From Podarcis gaigeae (Eukaryota), in the NCBI GenBank assembly GCA_964106915.2, contig OZ066914.1: a stretch of 64,000 bases of DNA, one strand, 5' to 3'. Made by a program: the position numbers and the translations under genes. The notes beneath the pieces were generated by a model, which was not told the origin of the DNA, made no database searches, and saw only the letters and a list, made by a program, of their open reading frames with translations. Of the stretch, positions 6,540-43,900 are shown piece by piece. Position 1 is the stretch's first letter, and each line of letters starts with the position of its first letter.

Positions 6540-11350
<4,811 letters not shown>

Positions 11351-27451: not shown

Positions 27452-29943
27452 ATGGACACTTCTTATCCTCGTGAAGACTACCTGCCCATGTCTTCCCGTA
27501 AGCAGGAACCTTCTCCAACGGTCATCACTGTCAAGCCTCCGGTGGTCCCCCGCGACTATATGATTTGGTCCGTATTCAACACCATCTACATGAACCTGTG
27601 TTGCCTTGGCTTTGTCGCCCTTGCTTATTCTGTCAAGGTAGGAAGATTCTCCACTGGTTCTTATCTCTTGGGCCCTGCACTGGGGCTACATATTTGCCCG
27701 GAATGGCCCCTCCAGAGAATTCTGGTTGAGAGCAATTCCCAGAGGGTAGCTGTGGTATTTGGTGGCATCAGTTACACAGAATCTGCTATGGAACCTTAGA
27801 GATAAGGAGGAAAGCATTTCAGTCTATCTTGGGGTAGTGGACATATCTAGGCATAATGATGAAGAGTGCTGTGAAACTCCAGAGCCTGTCTCTTACTGTT
27901 TCATACAGCAATTCCATTCCATAGTTCCTCTTCTAAAAACAACAGGACAGATTGCAATCCTGAATTTAAGTTTTAAAATGCTGCTTTCCCCAGGGGATTG
28001 TAGCATGCATTTCAAGTGGGTCCGGTATAATATTTTTTCCATTTCTCTCTGTTCTCTGGATTATGAAGCACTTTTAAAAAGGCAAAGGAAACAGAAGTAG
28101 AAATTGAAGTAGAAATATCTAGTAATCGAGGAAATACCACAAAGTCACTGCACCATAACCTGGTCATATGTGAAACTGCTGGAAGGAGAATTGAATTCCT
28201 GGATAGCTGTGGTTTTTCATGAAAGTTTAAAGAGCAAAATACAGGATAACAGAGACAAAAATTTACACTTGGTGCAGAAATGTGACTTCAAGAATCACTC
28301 GATGGCTACTAAATGTTATACCTGATAGAGCACATGCTTCAAACAGTTCATTTTTATGCAGATGACATTTCTCAGTATGTAGCTGCAGAAAATAAATTTG
28401 GGAAGGAACCAAATTCTCCCCACCTCTATGTACACCAGTCTTTATAGCTTATTGTTTGTAATATTGTATTGTTCAGCGTTTTAAGAGGTGTGACACCCAA
28501 AAATATTTCAAGGAAATGTTTCCTGGTATGGAGATTAATGGGGAGAAAGTCTTAGCTACTGCATATTGTGAACTAGGCTGTTATTTAAAGGTGCAGGAGT
28601 AGCACCAGCAAAATAAAGAAAGAAGTTAGCTATCCTGAAGTGAAGCAAAGATTGTAAAGGACACACAGGGGCAAGAGTACAATAAAATGTATAGGATCAA
28701 TTTGTGGTGTGTCATGCCGTTCCTTCCATTCCCACTGGCTCAGGCTGATTTGTTGATAGTTCATTAAATTGTGTAATTAATAGTCTGGAGAGAGGAAATG
28801 GGATTAAGAGTTGGGACAGGCTATTGTAAAGGCACTGTAACCAATATTTCAACACATTCCCGCATGCGGAACTACTGCTAAGTCAGTGATTTATCCAGAG
28901 ATAAGAAAGCTACTGTACACTCTCTTTGGTTTGTGATTGATGTAATGATTGTAAAAAATTATTTATGTATTTATTAAATTTGTTAGTCATTTTGTCTTGC
29001 CCAGGGCAACCCAAAATGACTTACAAAGAATTAGGTTGGCATTTAACATAACAGGAAATAAACAGCAGTAACATGTAAGTGACCAGAATGTCTCTAGACC
29101 TGGAAAAGGAGTTTGGAAAGCCAGGCTGGAGAGATGGGTGTGGTTTGGGAATCAACGTTATGTAGCGAATAGCAGAAGTAAAATAGGTCACTGGTTCTAG
29201 AGAGCTGGAACGAGGATGTGCCATACTTCTGTCCCTGTGAAAGCTCCAGCTTGTGCATCCACTGGCCTACTGAGCATCCACTGGCCTATAAGCGCATGGA
29301 GCATCTTATGCTGCCACTTTGGGACTTCTAGCACTAAACGGATGTGTATGGAACGCAGCAACAAGTGCTCACTTTAAGGCAATGCCAGCTTGTTTGGGCT
29401 TCTGTAAACCATTCCTACATCTGGATGGTGTCACGTGTGCCAACCATCACCCACCCAATTTGCTTTGTGAACTTCAGGGGAACAGAATGCGGACTGACCC
29501 CAATACCACAGGCACTGTGTAGACTAAAGAGACTGACCAAATCCAGCTCCCAAATATGCGTAGCTGTCTTGACATAGTTGCTTCTAACATTGTGACTCCA
29601 GTTTTGGGTGTTGTCCTTCTCAGTTGTGTTGTTCTGCTCTACACAGGGGGTTTCCCTTCCCCATCGCTTTCTTTCTGTGTAGCCTTACTAATACTCTGTG
29701 CCTTTTCCTTCTTCTTTTTTGAAGGCACGGGATCAGAAGGTGTCCGGTGACCTGGAAGCTGCCCATCGCTACGGATCCAAAGCCAGGTGCTACAATGTCC
29801 TTGCCACAGTGTGGAATGTGGTGCTGCCGCTCATGCTCATTGCTCTGGTGATCACGGGCGTCCTCCACCTCTCCAAGCTGGCTCAGGAGTCCATGGACTT
29901 TTTGGCTTACAGACTCTTTCCTAATGATGATGACAAGAAGTGA
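27452..29943 (+). CDS. IFITM5: Interferon-induced transmembrane protein 5 (BRIL); exons 27452-27637 and 29725-29943; 134 aa
   Basis: Diagnostic N-terminus MDTSYPRED; S40, C50 and C51 conserved; exon 2 [24 protein letters not shown]...[12 protein letters not shown]...DDDKK. Tail-to-tail with PGGHG, as in mammals. Confidence 0.97.
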
Positions 29944-34274: not shown

Positions 34275-35076
34275 AGTTAGGGTATATAGGACTACCACCT
34301 AAGCCATGACCAATTTAGCTGGTTCTACTCGAGAAATGGTAATTCAGAATGGATTCCTTCATCCTTAATCCTCTCCCACTGAAATCAATGGGATTCAGAA
34401 GAAGTCCCTTACTTTGGTTGGGTTGTACCCAACACAGGTATCTCTCAGGCCCTTTAACATGGGGAACTGTGCTGATTACATAGAAGGCCTCTGTCCTGGT
34501 TTGCAGAGTCCCCTTTAAATAGAATTGTTCTCATCTTCAGTCCAGTACTTTCCTGAACCTCTAAGATCCCCAGTCCCACAGATGTTCCCCCTTGGTAGGT
34601 CATTCTTACATGTACATGCATAGAATTGATGTCTAAGTGTGAAATGAAACCTGCATCCCTCAAGCCAACTATAAAAGGGGGAAAGAACAAGTTTGGGGGA
34701 GAGGGTTCCCTCCCACTGACCCACCCAGCCAATGTGGTTTTCTGATGATTAGGGGCTATGAGTGGTTTTGTTTTTTTGTTTTTTTAAAAAGACAGGTCTT
34801 GATTCTCAGCCAGACTAATTACAGGGCAGAAAGCCTCGTTTCTCTCCCTCCTTAAACATTCCCACATGCTGACATGAAGCTTGCAGTCTTTTTATACATC
34901 TGTGTTGGTTTGGGATTTCTTAAATGTGTTTGAACAGAAGCTCCTCCTTTGCCGATATTTAGTTTTTTTGTCCACATGCCTTGTGTGTTAACACGATACC
35001 AGGTGGGTGAGAGAAAGAGACGCAGGCAATACATCAAGTGCAGAAACGAGGCACATTATTTGCTGTTTGGTCTTTT

Positions 35077-36954
35077 ATTTATTTTATTTTTTAATAATAT
35101 TTTTTATTGAGTTTATGAAATACAGAAAAAAGAATAGAAAACAGATTATAGGAATAAAATAGAAAAGTTACAAATTTCCATGTTCTTTTTTCCATCAAGT
35201 CTAATGGACTTCCCCGCATCCTCCAAACCCTGCATTCTCTGTGGTACAGAACATCAGCAATTTGTTAACTTGTTTCAATACTTATTGTATCCTTCATTTT
35301 ATCATGTTACCTAATTTCAAAGATGTTATAACCCAAATCATATACATTTTCATTTAAACACAATAAAGTTATTTCATTATTCTACCTCTGACTTCTTGTG
35401 CCTTAATTTCCATTTCATTAATTTACCATTGCTGAAGCTAGAATTTCCTAAACGGTGCATTTTTTAACATTCATACAGCTTATAATGTTTTTTCAAATAG
35501 TCCTTAAATTTTTTCCAGTCCTCCTCAATTGTTTCTTCTCCCATGTCTCGGATTCTGCCAGTCATTTCGGCCAGTTCCATATAGTCCATCAACTGCGTGT
35601 GCCATTCCTCCAGCGTGGGTAGATCTTGTGTCTTCCAATGCTTTGCAATCAGGATCCTTGCTGCTGTAGTGGCATAAATAAAAAAAGTTCTATCTTTCTT
35701 AAACACTCTCTGGTCCACCATGCCCAGGAGAAAGGCCTCCGGTTTCTTAGGTAAGGTAAATCTAAGTACCTTTTTTAGTTCATTATGAATCATCTCCCAA
35801 AAGGCCTTCACTTTCGGGCAGGTCCACCAGAGGTGAAAGAATGTCCCTTCCGCCTCTTTACATTTCCAACATTTATTGTCAGACAGGTGATATATCTTAG
35901 CAAGCTTGACTGGGGTCATGTACCACCGGTATATCATTTTCATAATGTTTTCCTTCAAGGCACTACATGCCGTAAATTTCATTCCGGTGTTCCATAACCT
36001 TTCCCAGTCTTCAAACATAATGTTATGCCCCAAATCCTGCGCCCATTTTATCATGGTGGATTTGACTGTCTCATCCTGAGTATTCCATTTAAGCAGCAAG
36101 TTATACATTCTCAAAAGTAGTTTATTCTTTGGCTCTAACAGTTCTGTCTCTAGTTTCGATTTTTCCACCTGGAATCCAACTTTCTTATCCACTTTAAAAA
36201 CCTCCTGAATTTGTGCATAGTGCAACCAATCTCGCACCTTGTTTTTTAGTTTTTCCAAGCTCTGCAACCTCCAATTGTCTCCAATTTTTTCAATTATTTC
36301 CCCATATTTAGGCCAATTGGCCTCCATGTTAAGTCTCTTACGTGCCTTGGCCTCCACCGGTGAGAGCCACCTCAGAGTCTTACTCTCCAATAAGTCTTTG
36401 TATTTTGTCCAGACCATCAAAATTGCTCTTCTGACAATGTGGTTTTTAAACAATTTGTGCACTTTAACCTTGTCATACCACAAATATGCATGCCACCCAA
36501 AAGCATTGTCGAACCCTTCCAGATCTAGGACATCAGTGTTTTCCAGTAAAATCCAATCTTTCAACCAGCAGAAGGCTGCAGATTCATAATATAACCTCAA
36601 GTCTGGCAGGGCAAATCCCCCTCTTTCTTTCGCATCAGTTAATATTTTAAACTTTATTCGGGGCTTTTTGCCCTGCCAAACAAACTTGGAAATATCCTTC
36701 TGCCACTTTCCAAAACATTCCACCTTGTCCACGATCTGTAGGGCCTGAAACAAAAATAACATTTTCGGCAATACATTCATCTTTATAACTGCTATTCGGC
36801 CCAACAAGGAAAGTTTCAATCTTGACCATATTTCCAAATCTCTTTTAATTTCTGACCAACATTTCTCATAATTATCTTTAAACAAATTCAAATTTTTGGA
36901 GGTCAGATACACCCCTAGGTATTTTACTTTTTTAACCACATTTAGTTCTGTTTC
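35077..36954 (-). mobile_element. Young 5'-truncated L1-clade LINE (ORF2 C-terminal half intact)
   Basis: Open frame of about 497 codons (35464-36954) with KYLGV and the CCHC-like CWKC..FFHLWWTC motif; 3'UTR and A-rich tail; flanked by 146-bp direct repeats. Confidence 0.92.
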
Positions 36955-38980
36955 TGAACAGAAGCTCCTCCTTTGCCGATATTTAGTTTTTTTGTCCACA
37001 TGCCTTGTGTGTTAACCCGATACCAGGTGGGTGAGAAAAAGAGACGCAGGCAATACATCAAGTGCAGAAACGAGGCACATTATTTGCTGTTTGGTCTTTT
37101 AAATGAGGTTGGAAAGCATATTGAGGCCCCAACTTTAAGGAGCCTCTAAACACCTTCAGAACAACTCCAGAAAGACAAACAGAACCATTTCAAATTCCAC
37201 CTATATGACCTGGTGACATAGATCAGGTCAAGCCACAGATGGACACCTTGCAAAACTCTCCTCAGCAATTGAGCTCACTGGGTGGCTTTGGTCAAATCAT
37301 TATCTTCCACCTGAACAAATCACATAGGGTTGATGTGGAGGGGCAGGGAGAGACATTACGCCTTGTAGTTTTACAATAATTGCTGAATCAGCACAACCTT
37401 GAACAGCAGGAGCAAGCAACTTTTCTTTCTTTCTGTTGAGGGCCTCATTCCCTCAGGGGCAATTCGTTGAGGGACACATGTCAGTGGCGTGTAGATTCAG
37501 AACCAATTATATGTGGAGCCAGAGACAAGTGCTTTGGATTAACTCAATTGAAATGAAGACCCCCCCCCTTTGCTTCAGTTTGCACCATGGTTCCCTTGTA
37601 TTACAATTCCCAGTGCTCCTCAGGTCTACTCAGCACACCCCATGGGGTTTGAAAAGCTTCATCGCCATTCCCCTGAGTTAAGAGGCTGTGTCTCTTCCTG
37701 GAGGTTGTAGGTGCATCTTTAACCATCCTGATGAGGTTGCATTGCCAATCTGTGAGCCCTTTCCTGCTGGGCAAGAAAGAAGCACCCCATCCTGGTACAC
37801 TGTTTCCAGCATCTAAGGATCCCCTTGTGGTAATGTTTTGCAGGTGCCAGGTCTGCACTGTTTGGCCTGAAATCTTACAAACACACTCCAGCACTGCAAT
37901 GATCTCTTATGTAGGGCATCCCAAGCAGGGCCGTCTTAAGCATATCCAGCGCCGTGGTGCAAAGATCCCTCCACCCACCCACCCCCCATTTCCCAGAGTT
38001 GTCAAACTTTTCTAAGGGGTGGAACCACTGGACTTACTCCCAAGTAAGCAGGTGTAAGATTGCAGCCTTTCGTGCTGCTTCTCCTGCATTCTCCCTGTTC
38101 CTTCTCCTCACTTTCCTCAAAATGTGAAATCCTTGCACCTAATAGAAAAAAAATAATCTACTGACAGGGTTAGGGTTAGGGAGCTCACCCTGTCACGGGG
38201 ATTTGAACCACTGACCTTCCAATTGGCAAGCCCAAGAGGCTCAGTGGTTTAGATCACAGGAGGGGGTGGTGGAAAATGTCCTCTGCCTCCCTCACAGCCC
38301 CGATCCCCAGCATGGTGGCAGCGTTCAAGCAGGAAAACATGCTGGCGGACATGCTCTCCGGTGTCGGGGCACCCAAGAAGACAGCCCAGAAAGGGCTTCC
38401 TTTCGCCAGGAAGCAGGAGGAGGACAACGACTGGGAGCAGGGCTGTCTTTAGCAGATGCAGAAGCTTGGGAAGGAAGCTGTGTGTGTGCCTGCCAGCCAT
38501 ATTGTTAGTGGGGCGCAGCTGGTGGGCATGCAGGGAAAGGGGAGGCAGCTGGCAAAGCCGCACAGCTCCCCCACTTGCTGGGGCACCCCTGAGAGGCCGG
38601 CGCTCCTGTGTGATGAACCACTAAGACCAATGGGAAAGACGGCTCTGATCCCAAGGCTTGTATTATCTCAGAAGAAAGGCACGACTTCAGTTTGTATAGT
38701 TACGACATAGGAAGCTGAGATATACCTGTTCAGAGTAGTTGTCCATCTAGCTCAGTGTTGTCTACACTGACTGGCAGTGGCTCACAGCAGTAGCTCGCAG
38801 CAGCAAAGCACCTGCTCTGCTACTGAGCTACTGTCCTAGCCCTTTGTTCCTCAAATGATGCTTGGGGTTGTTGCTTGGAGCCCTGAGTGCCTGGAAAACG
38901 AAGTTGCCTGGCAGCTCTCGTCTTAACTCACTGGCTGTTCAGGGCACACATGGCTATGAGAAAGTAACTTCAGCTTGAAG

Positions 38981-39115
38981 CAGGCACAGGCAAACTCGGC
39001 CTCCAGATGTTTGGGGACTACAATTTCCACCATCCCTGACCGCTGATCCTGTTAGCTAGGGATGATGGGAGTTGTAGTCTCAAAACATCTGGAGGGCTTA
39101 GTTTGCCTATGCCTG
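38981..39115. mobile_element. hAT (Charlie-like) MITE
   Basis: TIRs caggcacaggcaaact and agtttgcctatgcctg; perfect TSD gcttgaag. Confidence 0.85.
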
Positions 39116-39438
39116 GCTTGAAGCATTTGGTTTGCTGTCCAAATCTCCCAGACAGCTATTCTTCCCAGCAGGGGCGCCGACTTATAAAAAATATTGGGGG
39201 GGCCCATACTGGGGTCCTGCCCCGGGAAGTTTTCTAAGATCCGCTCCCGGCCCGTTGCTGCTGCTGCCGCCCGCCTCGTGGCCCCCTCGCCAGCTGAGGG
39301 AGGGAGAGAGACCGAGAAGGAGAGAGATGCGTGGTGGGCAAGGCAAGTGCCCGCCGCGCCTCGCCTCCCACCGCCCCTCGTGCCGGCCGCCCCCTCCCCT
39401 CCCTTCCCCGCCCGCACTCGCTCGCTCGCCCTCCTCAC

Positions 39439-39547
39439 CCCAGCTCTTGGCCGTTCGCCCCAGGAACTCGCCGCTGTTGGGGTTGTAGATGAACCTCCGC
39501 CACTCGGCCATAGACTGGCTGAAGGGCTTCTCCTCCTCCTTGGCCAT
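39439..39547 (-). pseudogene. ATP1B3: Captured first coding exon of Na+/K+-ATPase beta-3 subunit, with 5'UTR and intron-1 start
   Basis: [37 protein letters not shown]|gtgagg: 109 coding nt with a phase-1 donor, matching ATP1B3 exon 1. No further ATP1B exons were seen in the window. Confidence 0.85.
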
Positions 39548-39586
<39 letters not shown>

Positions 39587-39898
39587 CTGGAAAGAGAGAG
39601 GGAGCTCGGCGGTTCGCGGGCGGCGGTTTTTCCTCTGCCGAAACAACAGCGGCTCCTCAGAACCGCTAAGTAACTCTCCCTCAGGCGCCCGGCGGGAGAG
39701 CAGAAGAGAGGAAAAGGAAAGAGGGGCTGGGCCAGTCGCACGCACCGAGCAAAACTACTCGCGCCGCCTCTTTTACTACCGTAATAATTATTTGTTTTAA
39801 CTCATTACTGAATGTATTTTAAAAGGTAACTATCAGCAAACAAGGAAAATAAAAAATACCAACATAATTTTGTGATTTTACAAAGCATAATATAACTA

Positions 39899-40906
39899 CC
39901 GTATTTTTCGCTCTATAACACGCACCTGACCATAACACGCACATCGTTTTTAGAGGAGGAAAACAAGGGGAAAAAACATTCTGAATGAAACAGTGGATGT
40001 ATCATTTTTGTGCTTCATGCTGTGGCCACAGACATGTGATCTGATGGTGAATTTGGGGTGACCCAATGCAAAAATCCTGAGGATCCATGTGGATCCATGT
40101 TTTGTAACCACGTTTTTGCACCATTGCAGCCCCAGGCAACAGTGGGTGCGTGATTTTGGGGGGGCAGGCTGTAGCCATGGACATGCTATGTGCTCTGATG
40201 GTGAATTTGGGCTGACCCAATGCAAAGATCCTGAGGATCCATGTTTTGTAACCACGTTTTTGCACCATTGCAGCCCCAGGCAACAGTGGGTGCGTGATTT
40301 TTGGGGGGCAGGCTGTAGCCATGGACATGCTATGTGCTCTGATGGTGAATTTGGGCTGACCCAATGCAAAGATTCTGAGGATCCATGTGGATCCATGCTT
40401 TTTAACCACATTTTTGCACCATTGCAGCCCCAGGCAACAGTGGGTGCGTGATTTTGGGGGGGCAGGCTGTAGCCATGGACATGCTATGTGATCTGATGGT
40501 GAATTTGGGCTGACCCAATGCAAAGATCCTGAGGATCCATGTGGATCCATGCTTTTTAACCACATTTTAAGTGGGGAGGGAAGGAAAAACACAGAAGGGA
40601 CACGGAGCAGGAGAGGGGTGTGCAGAGAAGCAGCTGGCTAAGAATGCAGGAGAGGGGTATAACAGGAGGAGGGAGGAAAGGAAGGCAAAAGTTTTCCCTC
40701 ACCTACCCACCCAAGTCAGCCAGCTCGCGCGCTCTCTCTCGCTCTCTCTCTCTCCCTCCTGCACGGAGCACAGAGACACACTCTGCTTTCCCTCTGCCTG
40801 GAGGGGAGGGGCTTTCCCTGCTCTTTGTTCCGTTTGAGCAAACACGGCAAGGAAACAGAGGAGGGTGGGCAGTAAGACCCTGAGGCAGAATGCCGGAAAA
40901 ATACGG
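39899..40906. mobile_element. Nested Tc1/Mariner (pogo-like) non-autonomous element
   Basis: TA|ccgtatttttcg ... cggaaaaatacgg|TA: 11-bp matching termini with TA target duplication. Confidence 0.75.
40043..40568. repeat. Tandem repeat with a unit of about 154 bp, 3.4 copies
   Basis: gatggtgaatttggg recurs at 40043, 40197, 40341 and 40495. Confidence 0.9.
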
Positions 40907-43900
40907 TAATAATTTTCTTAAATTATTGGGGGGGCAGAGCCCCCCCAAACGAATTTTTGAGGGGGCTCGGGCCCCCTCAGGCCCCATGGAGTCGGCGCCT
41001 ATGCTTCCCAGTGTGGAAGAACAAAATGATAAAGGAATTAAAAATGAGAAAGTGTGTGTGTGTAGGTGTGGTTTTGCTAGCAAGGAAGGAGGGACCAGCA
41101 GCCCCAGGGTCAAGCTGAAACGCAAAGTCTGTGAGAGAAGAGAGTCTGGAATGTATAGCCTGTGTGTGAATAAGGCAAGGACTGGGATCCTTGACAAGGA
41201 ACACAGAGGCTCCAGCTGTCATCTCAAGGATTGCTTGCTAAGGAAGTCTGTTGAATAAACAAGAGGGAGGGGAAAAGATGAAGAACAGAAGATCTTGTTT
41301 TACATTCTTGAAGATTCTGTTTTACAACCTTGATGTCACAAGGCTGCGTATGGAAAACTCCCACTTTTGCCATGTGTGTAATCTTTTGTAAGGTATATAG
41401 GGCTTTAAGGGGTAGTAACTCTTAGGAGGGACACGCTGTGCTCCTTGTGGGGTAGTTTGTCCACCTTTTGGTCCCCATCCTGCACTCCACTCTCTCCTGT
41501 GACTCCTAGAAGCTGTCAGCTTGCGACAGCAGCCACACCCCAGGAACTGCTTCGACTAAACTGCCGGCTAAACCAGGTGAGGGTAATCAATGGGTCTCAA
41601 ACGCTCAGTGAGTTAGGGATTTCCCCTGCCTGCAAAGATGGGCTCCAGTGAACCGAGACCAATAGTGGGTCCAGTGGTCAAGAAGGCAGTTTTTGCACAT
41701 GCTGGTGGGGCTTGTCAACCTGAGAAGGCAGCCCATCTAGGAAAAAGAAAACTCTGATCCTAAACCTCTACTGCTTTGTGGGATATCTTCAGGAAAAGAA
41801 ATGACCAGGAGTAAACTCTACACAAATCCAGAATGAAGTCCCTAAGATGGTTGTATGGCATCTTGTACACCTCCTTCTGGCAACTCCCGTAGCCAATAGG
41901 TATTTGGATTCAACTGGCTGGGCTTGAACCCCAAAAGTCCCCCAACACAAGAGTGGAGGCTGAGATGAGGGAAATATTATAGAATGCTTTGCAGCCAGTA
42001 CAGTGTCAACCAAAGTTTGGCAGGTGGCTATCAGAGAAAGCCTCTGTGGCTTTAGGATGCCCTCTTCAGACAGGTTTGCCTGGCACGGGGATTGCAGTCT
42101 TTCCTGTCCCAGATGATCTTTTAATTTTTAATCTTACCTTCTTTAAAGAGCTTCTGTACTGCTGTTCCTCTCCCTTTTTTGTTTTGTTTTTTTTTAAACG
42201 TATTTTTTATTAAAGATTTCTTGGTTTACAAAAGTATGTGCAATGTCTCTTTTTTCAAGTTACATTTTCTACAGATCCATTTCATTTGTTGAGACATTAG
42301 TGTTACATTGGGAAGAAAAAGGGGGGAAGAGGTGGAGGGGGGCATGGTGAATGGGGACAGGGTCAGATGGCAAGGCTTCTATTCTACTTAATGTATGTGT
42401 GGGGTTTTATGTCAGCTTCGCTTGTGTGGGTTCACTTGTGTTCCTTTGGTGGTGAGAGAGATTGGGGTTGGCATAAGGTGTGGTTGTTTGTGATTGGCTG
42501 TGGTGAACTTTGTTTTCATGTGTGAGTGAGGTGGATGGGTATTTTTTAATTAGGTTAGCCATACTGAGTCATATGCTGTTGGTGGATTCTTGTCATCTTC
42601 TTGTTGGGCTGTATATGTGATAAAGGGGAGGGTGAAGGTGTCTTCTTCCATTTGTCCCCGTGTCAGTTTCAGTTTATTCGTTAATTTTTCTAATAAAGCT
42701 GTTTCCCATACTATCCTTTTTTTGGTTTTAACCCTGGATCTTATTTTGCTAGCGGTTTTGTTCCGTTTTAGTATTTTTTGTCTATTATATTTTATAATGT
42801 ATTTTTTGGGTCTTTTTCATGTAAACCACTGCAAAAACAACTAACAAAATGCTATATTCTACATAGCATTTTGCTCCACAGCCTCCATCCACTCTTTCTT
42901 CCTCTCCACCCGTTGTAACAAGCAGTGTGTATGCTGCACAGCAGGCGGACAGGCAGGCAGGCAGGCAAGGGGTGCCTGACCCAGCAGGACTAGGAAAAGA
43001 AACTGTGGACGCTTCTTGTCCCCTGCTGCCTTTGGAAATTTAAAAAAGGAATGTTCTCTTCATTTCCCCCCTGGCATTCCTAACCCCTGGCATTTACACA
43101 ACCCAGGTCAGGGTAAACAGATGACAGTACCATGCACAGCCTATTTCCTCTTCAGATGCTCCTTTCGGGCCTTCCCTTCCCTGAATCAGTGGTTTTGGTG
43201 CCATCGTGTGGTTGTTTTGTTGACTTTCAAAGGCTAAAAGTGGGAGGAAGCAACGCCCCCAAAGTTCCCTTAAATTATTCTCCCCCTTTGCCAACTGCTG
43301 TTCATGCAATGTTTCTACAACCGCCAAGCAACTCTCAGACAGTATTCCACTATTTGGAAGGAATGAATGGTTTTCTTCATCCTGCTGAAAGATTGCAGCG
43401 AGCAACTGTGTTGACCCTGAAATTCAGATTCCCTTCCTCTGCCTTCTGACATTGTCAGGACATAGCCAAAACATCAGGTTCAGGAAGGTCTGTGTAGCTG
43501 GTGGAGGAACAGGATGTGGAAAATAAGCTCTCATAGCATATGCAAAGAGAGACTTCTCTTAACCGCTGACTAACCAAACAGTGAAAATGCTCTGGAAGGC
43601 ATGTAAATGCCTTTTTGGTAGTCAAGATAACCCTGGGGCTAATTGGTGCAAGCTGTAAAATGAGATCATATGTGCTTATCTGCTTGCTTTGAAGCCTTAG
43701 TTTTGATTTAGCGAGTTGGGAGAGGGGAGGCTGCTATTCATAGTAGGTCAGTTATTCCCTTATCTGAGAGATGGATGAGAACTGGAAAGAGGCTTCTAAA
43801 CCGAGTTAATTGGACTGTTGATGCCAGCATATGCAGCTTGCTTTTTGTATAAGTAACGCTTAGCATATGAGCCTCTCAAAGACAAGATGTGGCAAATGCT

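Follow-up and report, generated by a model that had tools for sequence, protein, structure and literature searches.

The window, a 64,000-nucleotide stretch of Podarcis gaigeae DNA (contig OZ066914.1) without any N, was nearest to Podarcis, with a distance of 1.7–3.1% in the IFITM5 region. IFITM5 is located on the plus strand at about 27455–29943. A minus-strand gene, which we take to be PGGHG, has an exon with GH65-type motifs and its last exon near 45.7–46.0 kb. A CpG-island fragment of ATP1B3 lies between hAT-type ends about 4.7 kb past the end of PGGHG and 9.2 kb past the stop codon of IFITM5, and the whole unit was inserted here with an 8-bp TSD. The cargo is antisense to IFITM5 and faces it, the orientation already reported in the first-pass annotation. 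The features are as follows.

39161–39168, plus strand: left TSD, 8 bp, second base T and seventh base A; present as a single copy at empty orthologous sites
39169–39240, plus strand: hAT-type left end, 72 bp; TIR at 39169–39182; very high depth in every DNA run
39241–39438, minus strand: captured start of ATP1B3 intron 1, 198 nt including the GT donor (39438–39437); alignment extendable to 39236 with one mismatch; native RNA reads splice here to exon 2
39439–39547, minus strand: captured first coding exon of ATP1B3, 109 nt from the ATG at 39547, 36 codons plus 1 nt; frame open, with K6E and a synonymous change at R18
39548–39773, minus strand: 226 nt of captured ATP1B3 sequence ahead of the ATG, covering the 5′ UTR and core-promoter region; (CT)n expanded at 39551–39585
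39774–39790, no strand assigned: filler at the capture breakpoint, reproducing left-flank sequence of the MITE site, three bases of MITE end (CCG), TA and right-flank sequence; parent-type contigs of run X6 diverge left of 39791
39791–39896, no strand assigned: AT-rich interior of the hAT-type parent, missing from native ATP1B3; abuts 40907 in MITE-free copies
39897–40908, no strand assigned: nested Tc1/mariner-type MITE (39899–40906) with TA duplications at 39897–39898 and 40907–40908; tandem array at about 40034–40568
40909–41003, minus strand: hAT-type right end, 95 bp; TIR at 40990–41003; a contig of run X2 enters it from the right flank
41004–41011, plus strand: right TSD, pairing with 39161–39168
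8684–8904, no strand assigned: separate short MITE with CpG-decayed related TIRs and a 7/8 TSD

The element occupies 39169–41003 (1835 bp) and is bounded by two perfectly identical copies of CTTCCCAG. Its TIRs are 14 nt long and identical at 12 of 14 positions, so the length, the perfect TSD and the inverted ends given in the first-pass annotation were all recovered by measurement. Two pairs combining a TSD with at least 12/14 TIR identity occurred in the window and none in 40 order-2 Markov shuffles. An 8-bp TSD and short TIRs are the marks of hAT elements, and the hAT assignment rests on these because no transposase coding was found in the element. With reference to the terminal motif YARNG, as given in PMC3014272, the left end (CAGGG) fits and the right end (CATAG) deviates at position 3. 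An Rfam search of 37000–43000 gave no match.

The cargo, about 530 bp on the minus strand (39241–39773), is the 5′ end of ATP1B3. The 36-residue exon peptide matched the Pfam family Na_K-ATPase (E = 6e-8) and, among PDB structures, matched the beta-3 subunit best (E = 2e-12), followed by H/K-ATPase beta (E = 6e-5) and beta-1 (E = 0.007). It was 97% identical to ATP1B3 of Podarcis lilfordi. The identification as ATP1B3 thus stood, as did the described CpG-rich block with its 5′ UTR, (CT)n tract, exon, GT donor and about 200 nt of intron 1. The exon had also been called undamaged. Its reading frame is indeed open, but it carries K6E, at a codon that is K in all 13 orthologues aligned, besides the synonymous change at R18. 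This exon encodes the cytoplasmic N-tail only; the transmembrane helix of ATP1B3 begins in exon 2. Read without splicing, the frame has 121 codons and extends into the hAT left end. The observed/expected CpG ratio was 0.80 in the cargo versus 0.32 in the window.

Native ATP1B3 was compared in five lacertids (P. lilfordi, Zootoca, Lacerta agilis, P. muralis and P. raffonei). At all five loci the alignment covers 39773 to 39241/39236, with an abrupt end on either side. The cargo differs by substitutions at 1.9–2.2% from P. muralis and P. lilfordi and at about 5% from Zootoca and Lacerta. In line with the first-pass annotation, which expected the native gene elsewhere, each of five assemblies has ATP1B3 and IFITM5 on separate chromosome records. 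As in a Pack-TIR, TIR-element ends flank host non-TE sequence with an identifiable parental copy, the native ATP1B3 of relatives. RNA 5′ ends of native ATP1B3 in a related species map to 39680 and 39702. The cargo stops short of the native CCAAT, GC box and CRE, which are 33, 26 and 15 nt past its breakpoint and were not captured. The start region is thus inside the cargo and the nearest activator motifs are outside.

The analysis covered DNA runs of a second sample of this species (X2) and of two relatives (X4 and X6), together with assemblies of related lizards. The orthologous site was empty, with one copy of CTTCCCAG, in P. muralis, P. raffonei, L. agilis and P. lilfordi. The exact empty joint 39160>41004 was present in X4 and X6 and was not seen in X2, where a contig links the right flank to the element end. 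In the Zootoca orthologue a deletion covers the insertion site. No TE was found at the orthologous site in six relatives. Because the relatives have empty sites and X2 has an occupied-site contig, the insertion is real, recent and lineage-restricted, and it is not the fill-in of an old shared element. The single TSD copy in four assemblies and the empty joint in two runs are what the first-pass annotation had expected in related lizards.

From left to right, the element consists of the 72-bp left end, the cargo, 17 nt of filler, the AT-rich interior, a nested 1008-bp MITE and the 95-bp right end. The nested MITE makes up 55% of the element and contains a 144/154-bp tandem array. TA on both sides and an 11-nt TIR core mark it as Tc1/mariner-type, presumably of a Tc2/Kanga-like subfamily. 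The MITE-free joint 39896>40907 was present in X2, X4 and X6 at depths of 28, 133 and 3776, which confirms the nesting. To judge from its sequence, the filler resembles an excision footprint or a templated insert of the nested MITE site, and on a reading made after the fact it suggests a break associated with the nested MITE as the event that set off the capture. The separate MITE at 8684–8904, noted previously for its related ends, was indeed present. It was rejected as a cargo-free parent, since it shares no internal similarity with the Pack element and is a relative by TIR only.

Contig depth pointed to many copies. In X2 the flank contigs had depths of 9.1–9.9. One cargo contig (39241–39353, depth 2315, no differences) starts exactly at one breakpoint and another (39596–39773, depth 2050, one difference) ends exactly at the other. 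The ratio of cargo to flank depth was about 215–245 in X2 (half that if the flank contigs are single alleles), about 19–20 in X4 and 13–47 in X6; contig depth is not copy number, and these ratios give the order of magnitude only. Changes at 39313 and 39348 were on deep contigs of X2 and X6 and a change at 39496 on deep contigs of X2, X4 and X6; all three are absent from the five native genes, which are those of relatives, so some changes counted as derived could predate the capture. The changes at 39412 and 39634 are private to the copy in the window. A contig of X4 spans the same junction at 39773. In X6 a contig (13x) extends 385 nt past 39773 with sequence unlike the window, and this may be a longer form of the element. 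The hAT ends reached thousands of times the flank depth, and cargo-free relatives are far commoner than cargo copies. By this depth-based estimate, cargo copies number roughly 100–250 in this species and tens in the two relatives. The capture is thus probably high-copy, in support of the multiple copies predicted by the first-pass annotation. Deep contigs ending at the breakpoints, with diagnostic changes in common, indicate one capture followed by amplification. The simplest reading is a single capture before the species split (or a spread by introgression) and then unequal bursts.

We therefore consider it very likely that the element belongs to a multicopy, non-autonomous Pack-hAT family that captured the 5′ end of ATP1B3 at the DNA level. 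Support for the DNA-level capture by a non-autonomous hAT-type element that had been proposed comes from the empty orthologous sites, the location of native ATP1B3 on another chromosome, the intron sequence that was kept and the abrupt breakpoints. In an ancestral Podarcis, a small hAT element would have acquired a single copy of the ATP1B3 fragment, as DNA; the likeliest mechanism is template switching or gap repair after a break within the hAT element, and the nested Tc1/mariner MITE may have caused this break. The composite would then have been mobilised in trans by a hAT transposase, to its roughly 100–250 copies here and tens in the two relatives. Most copies are probably passengers.

Other origins were weighed against this one. 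That the block is the native ATP1B3 promoter, or a product of mis-assembly, has practically no probability in spite of its nearly intact CpG island and exon. The first-pass annotation had itself named downstream exons, a mis-assembly or a best match outside the ATP1B genes as findings that would overturn it. No further ATP1B3 exon was found in the 64-kb window, the native gene is on another chromosome, the TSD is clean, relatives have empty sites, the best match is beta-3, and an independent sample (X2) has a contig that enters the element end from the flank. Insertion of a retrocopy into a hAT element, whether from processed or from partly spliced RNA, was likewise rejected as highly improbable. 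The 5′ breakpoint does lie within about 70–90 nt of the native RNA 5′ ends, as a retrocopy might, but the cargo reaches upstream of those ends, keeps 198 nt of intron 1, and has no exon 2, poly(A) or inner TSD. The retained intron had been used to the same effect before. Helitron capture was rejected too: TIRs and an 8-bp TSD were found in place of TC...CTRR ends, a 3′ hairpin and insertion without a TSD. Filling of a gap in a resident hAT, independent of transposition, would give a single-copy Pack-TIR made in place. This is the commonest route in vertebrates (PMC8277862), and the short filler at one junction would suit it. We think it very unlikely here, since no TE was present at the orthologous site in six relatives, the parent gene is on another chromosome, cargo depth is 13–245 times that of the flanks, and the diagnostic changes are common to species in which the site is empty.

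Compound (macro) transposition, in which the DNA between two hAT insertions, one in the promoter and one in intron 1 of ATP1B3, was carried along and the inner ends were lost by later deletions, is an unlikely source, although not as remote as those above. The two mismatches between the TIRs would agree with it, and so would the contig of X6 that runs 385 nt beyond 39773, by which longer forms may exist. However, no hAT TIR was found at or near either breakpoint of native ATP1B3 in the five lacertids, the element has no inner TIR, and the moved DNA would need repair from the homologue because native ATP1B3 is intact. A separate matter is whether the cargo itself drove the amplification of the Pack-hAT family, by a CpG island that keeps germ-line copies unmethylated and open, and thus better transposase substrates, or that acts as a promoter source. 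Low CpG decay in the cargo would favour this, and bat Helitrons with promoter or first-exon cargo attain higher copy number (PMC4224331). Against it, cargo-free relatives are far commoner, with hAT ends at thousands of times flank depth, and we regard it as possible but doubtful.

Transitions had occurred at 0 of 88 CpG bases of the cargo by a three-way count (1–2 by inspection) versus 13 of 82 in the flanks, a weak test of CpG decay since the branch includes time as the native island. Other substitutions amounted to 1.0% in the cargo versus 1.7% in the flanks. The base counts hint that the copies are mostly unmethylated in the germ line. The copies would then scatter a seemingly mostly unmethylated CpG island together with an ATG and a splice donor, and could supply an alternative first exon only where a copy lies in sense within a gene or upstream of it. 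In the window there is no same-strand host exon downstream of the cargo and only cryptic acceptors are present. By its sequence, the copy here could at most give a non-coding or a short 121-codon transcript. In an RNA run (X23), 482 of 483 reads at 39496 carried the native base and 396 reads spliced from 39438 to native exon 2. As this run comes from another species, it confirms the donor and says little about the copies. Chimeric transcripts starting from the cargo cassette are speculative.

Both the class of element and the type of cargo are already known, and in its working the element is comparable to a Pack-MULE or to HelibatN3. Tan et al. (2021) covered 100 animal genomes and described 370 Pack-TIRs, of which 208 are hAT and four are multicopy (PMC8277862); wall lizards are not named in the main text of that paper. 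One of their elements, Pack-hAT-N8_XT of Xenopus tropicalis, has three copies with 291 bp of CAPSL 5′ UTR (PMC8277862). The lizard element resembles it in its non-autonomous hAT ends around a host 5′ fragment, its TSD, a distant parent and an empty orthologous site. It differs in its presence in several species, at about 100–250 copies by depth here, and in its cargo of a coding exon, a donor and a CpG island. As with a multicopy Pack-TIR, no cargo-free TE was found at the orthologous site and the parent is distal. In bats, Helitrons have multiplied promoter and first-exon cargo into thousands of copies (Thomas et al. 2014; PMC4224331). Among them, HelibatN3 of Myotis carries the NUBPL promoter, 5′ UTR, exon 1 and part of intron 1 in about 1000 copies (PMC4224331). 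Here too the 5′ end of a gene was amplified to high copy in a vertebrate, but HelibatN3 is a rolling-circle element without TSD or TIR while the lizard element is cut-and-paste, with TIRs and an 8-bp TSD. Rice Pack-MULEs are likewise TIR elements with GC-rich gene sequence that raises GC at the insertion site, yet they belong to the Mutator superfamily of plants, with long TIRs and 8–11-bp TSDs, and have expression data behind them (PMC5861414).

In lizards, Novick et al. (2011) describe the non-autonomous Anolis families hobo_AC and the orphan hAT-N6 to N8_AC (PMC3014272). These families, like the present one, incorporated extraneous DNA and nested TEs, kept their mobility and make an 8-bp TSD, but the DNA reported as incorporated is mostly TE fragments (PMC3014272). 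The TIR of our element is not in the TIR table of that source. In the literature covered, outside which lay most subscription papers, Repbase and Dfam, nothing relevant was found on ATP1B3 capture or on Podarcis Pack elements. What is unusual is the scale for a vertebrate TIR element and a cargo with a coding exon and a donor.

The vertebrate Pack-TIRs described are nearly all single-copy repair products. A wider reading is that wall-lizard hATs systematically capture housekeeping CpG-island 5′ ends, leaving tens to hundreds of unmethylated, species-specific copies, some of which serve as first exons or antisense promoters. We hold this only tentatively and think it rather unlikely. If true, it would mean that an amniote has a Pack-MULE-like cut-and-paste system that is still active. 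By the depth estimate the ATP1B3 element has spread one CpG island over a hundred or so sites or more; with roughly tenfold differences in number among close species and empty sites in relatives, this amounts to a natural experiment. The copies could test whether CpG-island sequence alone prevents methylation and starts transcription, and could show with what frequency a mobile ATG-plus-donor cassette turns into a new first exon. They will also interfere with read mapping at ATP1B3 and with copy-number and methylation calls there.

The features of the window considered here, around and beyond the non-autonomous hAT-type Pack element that carries the captured ATP1B3 5′ end (the cargo), are as follows.

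600-21200, plus strand: tandem cluster of IFITM paralogues
35078-36948: LINE-like fragment with a 515-aa ORF on the minus strand
37926-38647: second hAT-type element, 722 bp, with TSD and TIR
38981-39115: hairpin MITE, 135 bp, with 8-bp TSD GCTTGAAG
39774-39790: filler adjoining the cargo breakpoint

The filler matches a join of the nested Tc1/mariner-type MITE's site that resembles an excision footprint. In run X6 (DNA reads of a relative), a 584-nt contig at 13x flank depth matched the window at 39596-39773 and extended a further 385 nt beyond the breakpoint, where it was dissimilar to the window. This contig possibly represents a subfamily whose ATP1B3 promoter is longer or whose interior is different. 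The nested MITE (39899-40906) reached tens of thousands x flank depth. Its two ends match each other over only about 11 nt, and it may itself be chimeric, with parts from two Tc1/mariner MITE families.

The 722-bp element is flanked by a perfect TSD, ATCCCAAG, and contains a SINE-like piece at 38179-38259. Its TIR resembles the type of the orphan lizard families Anolis hAT-N6 to N8. The insertion was found in P. muralis and P. raffonei and was absent from L. agilis. The 135-bp hairpin MITE, 45 bp from the Pack element, has an empty site in L. agilis. Together with the Pack element, these make three hAT-type insertions of differing ages within 3 kb.

The LINE-like fragment was absent from P. 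muralis, P. raffonei and L. agilis, and its ORF had no Pfam match. It is bounded by a 153-bp direct repeat (34925-35077 and 36949-37101, 97%), which is unusually long. In the IFITM cluster, three paralogues each have their own CpG island, at about 6.5-7.2, 14.1-14.6 and 18.6-19.3 kb.
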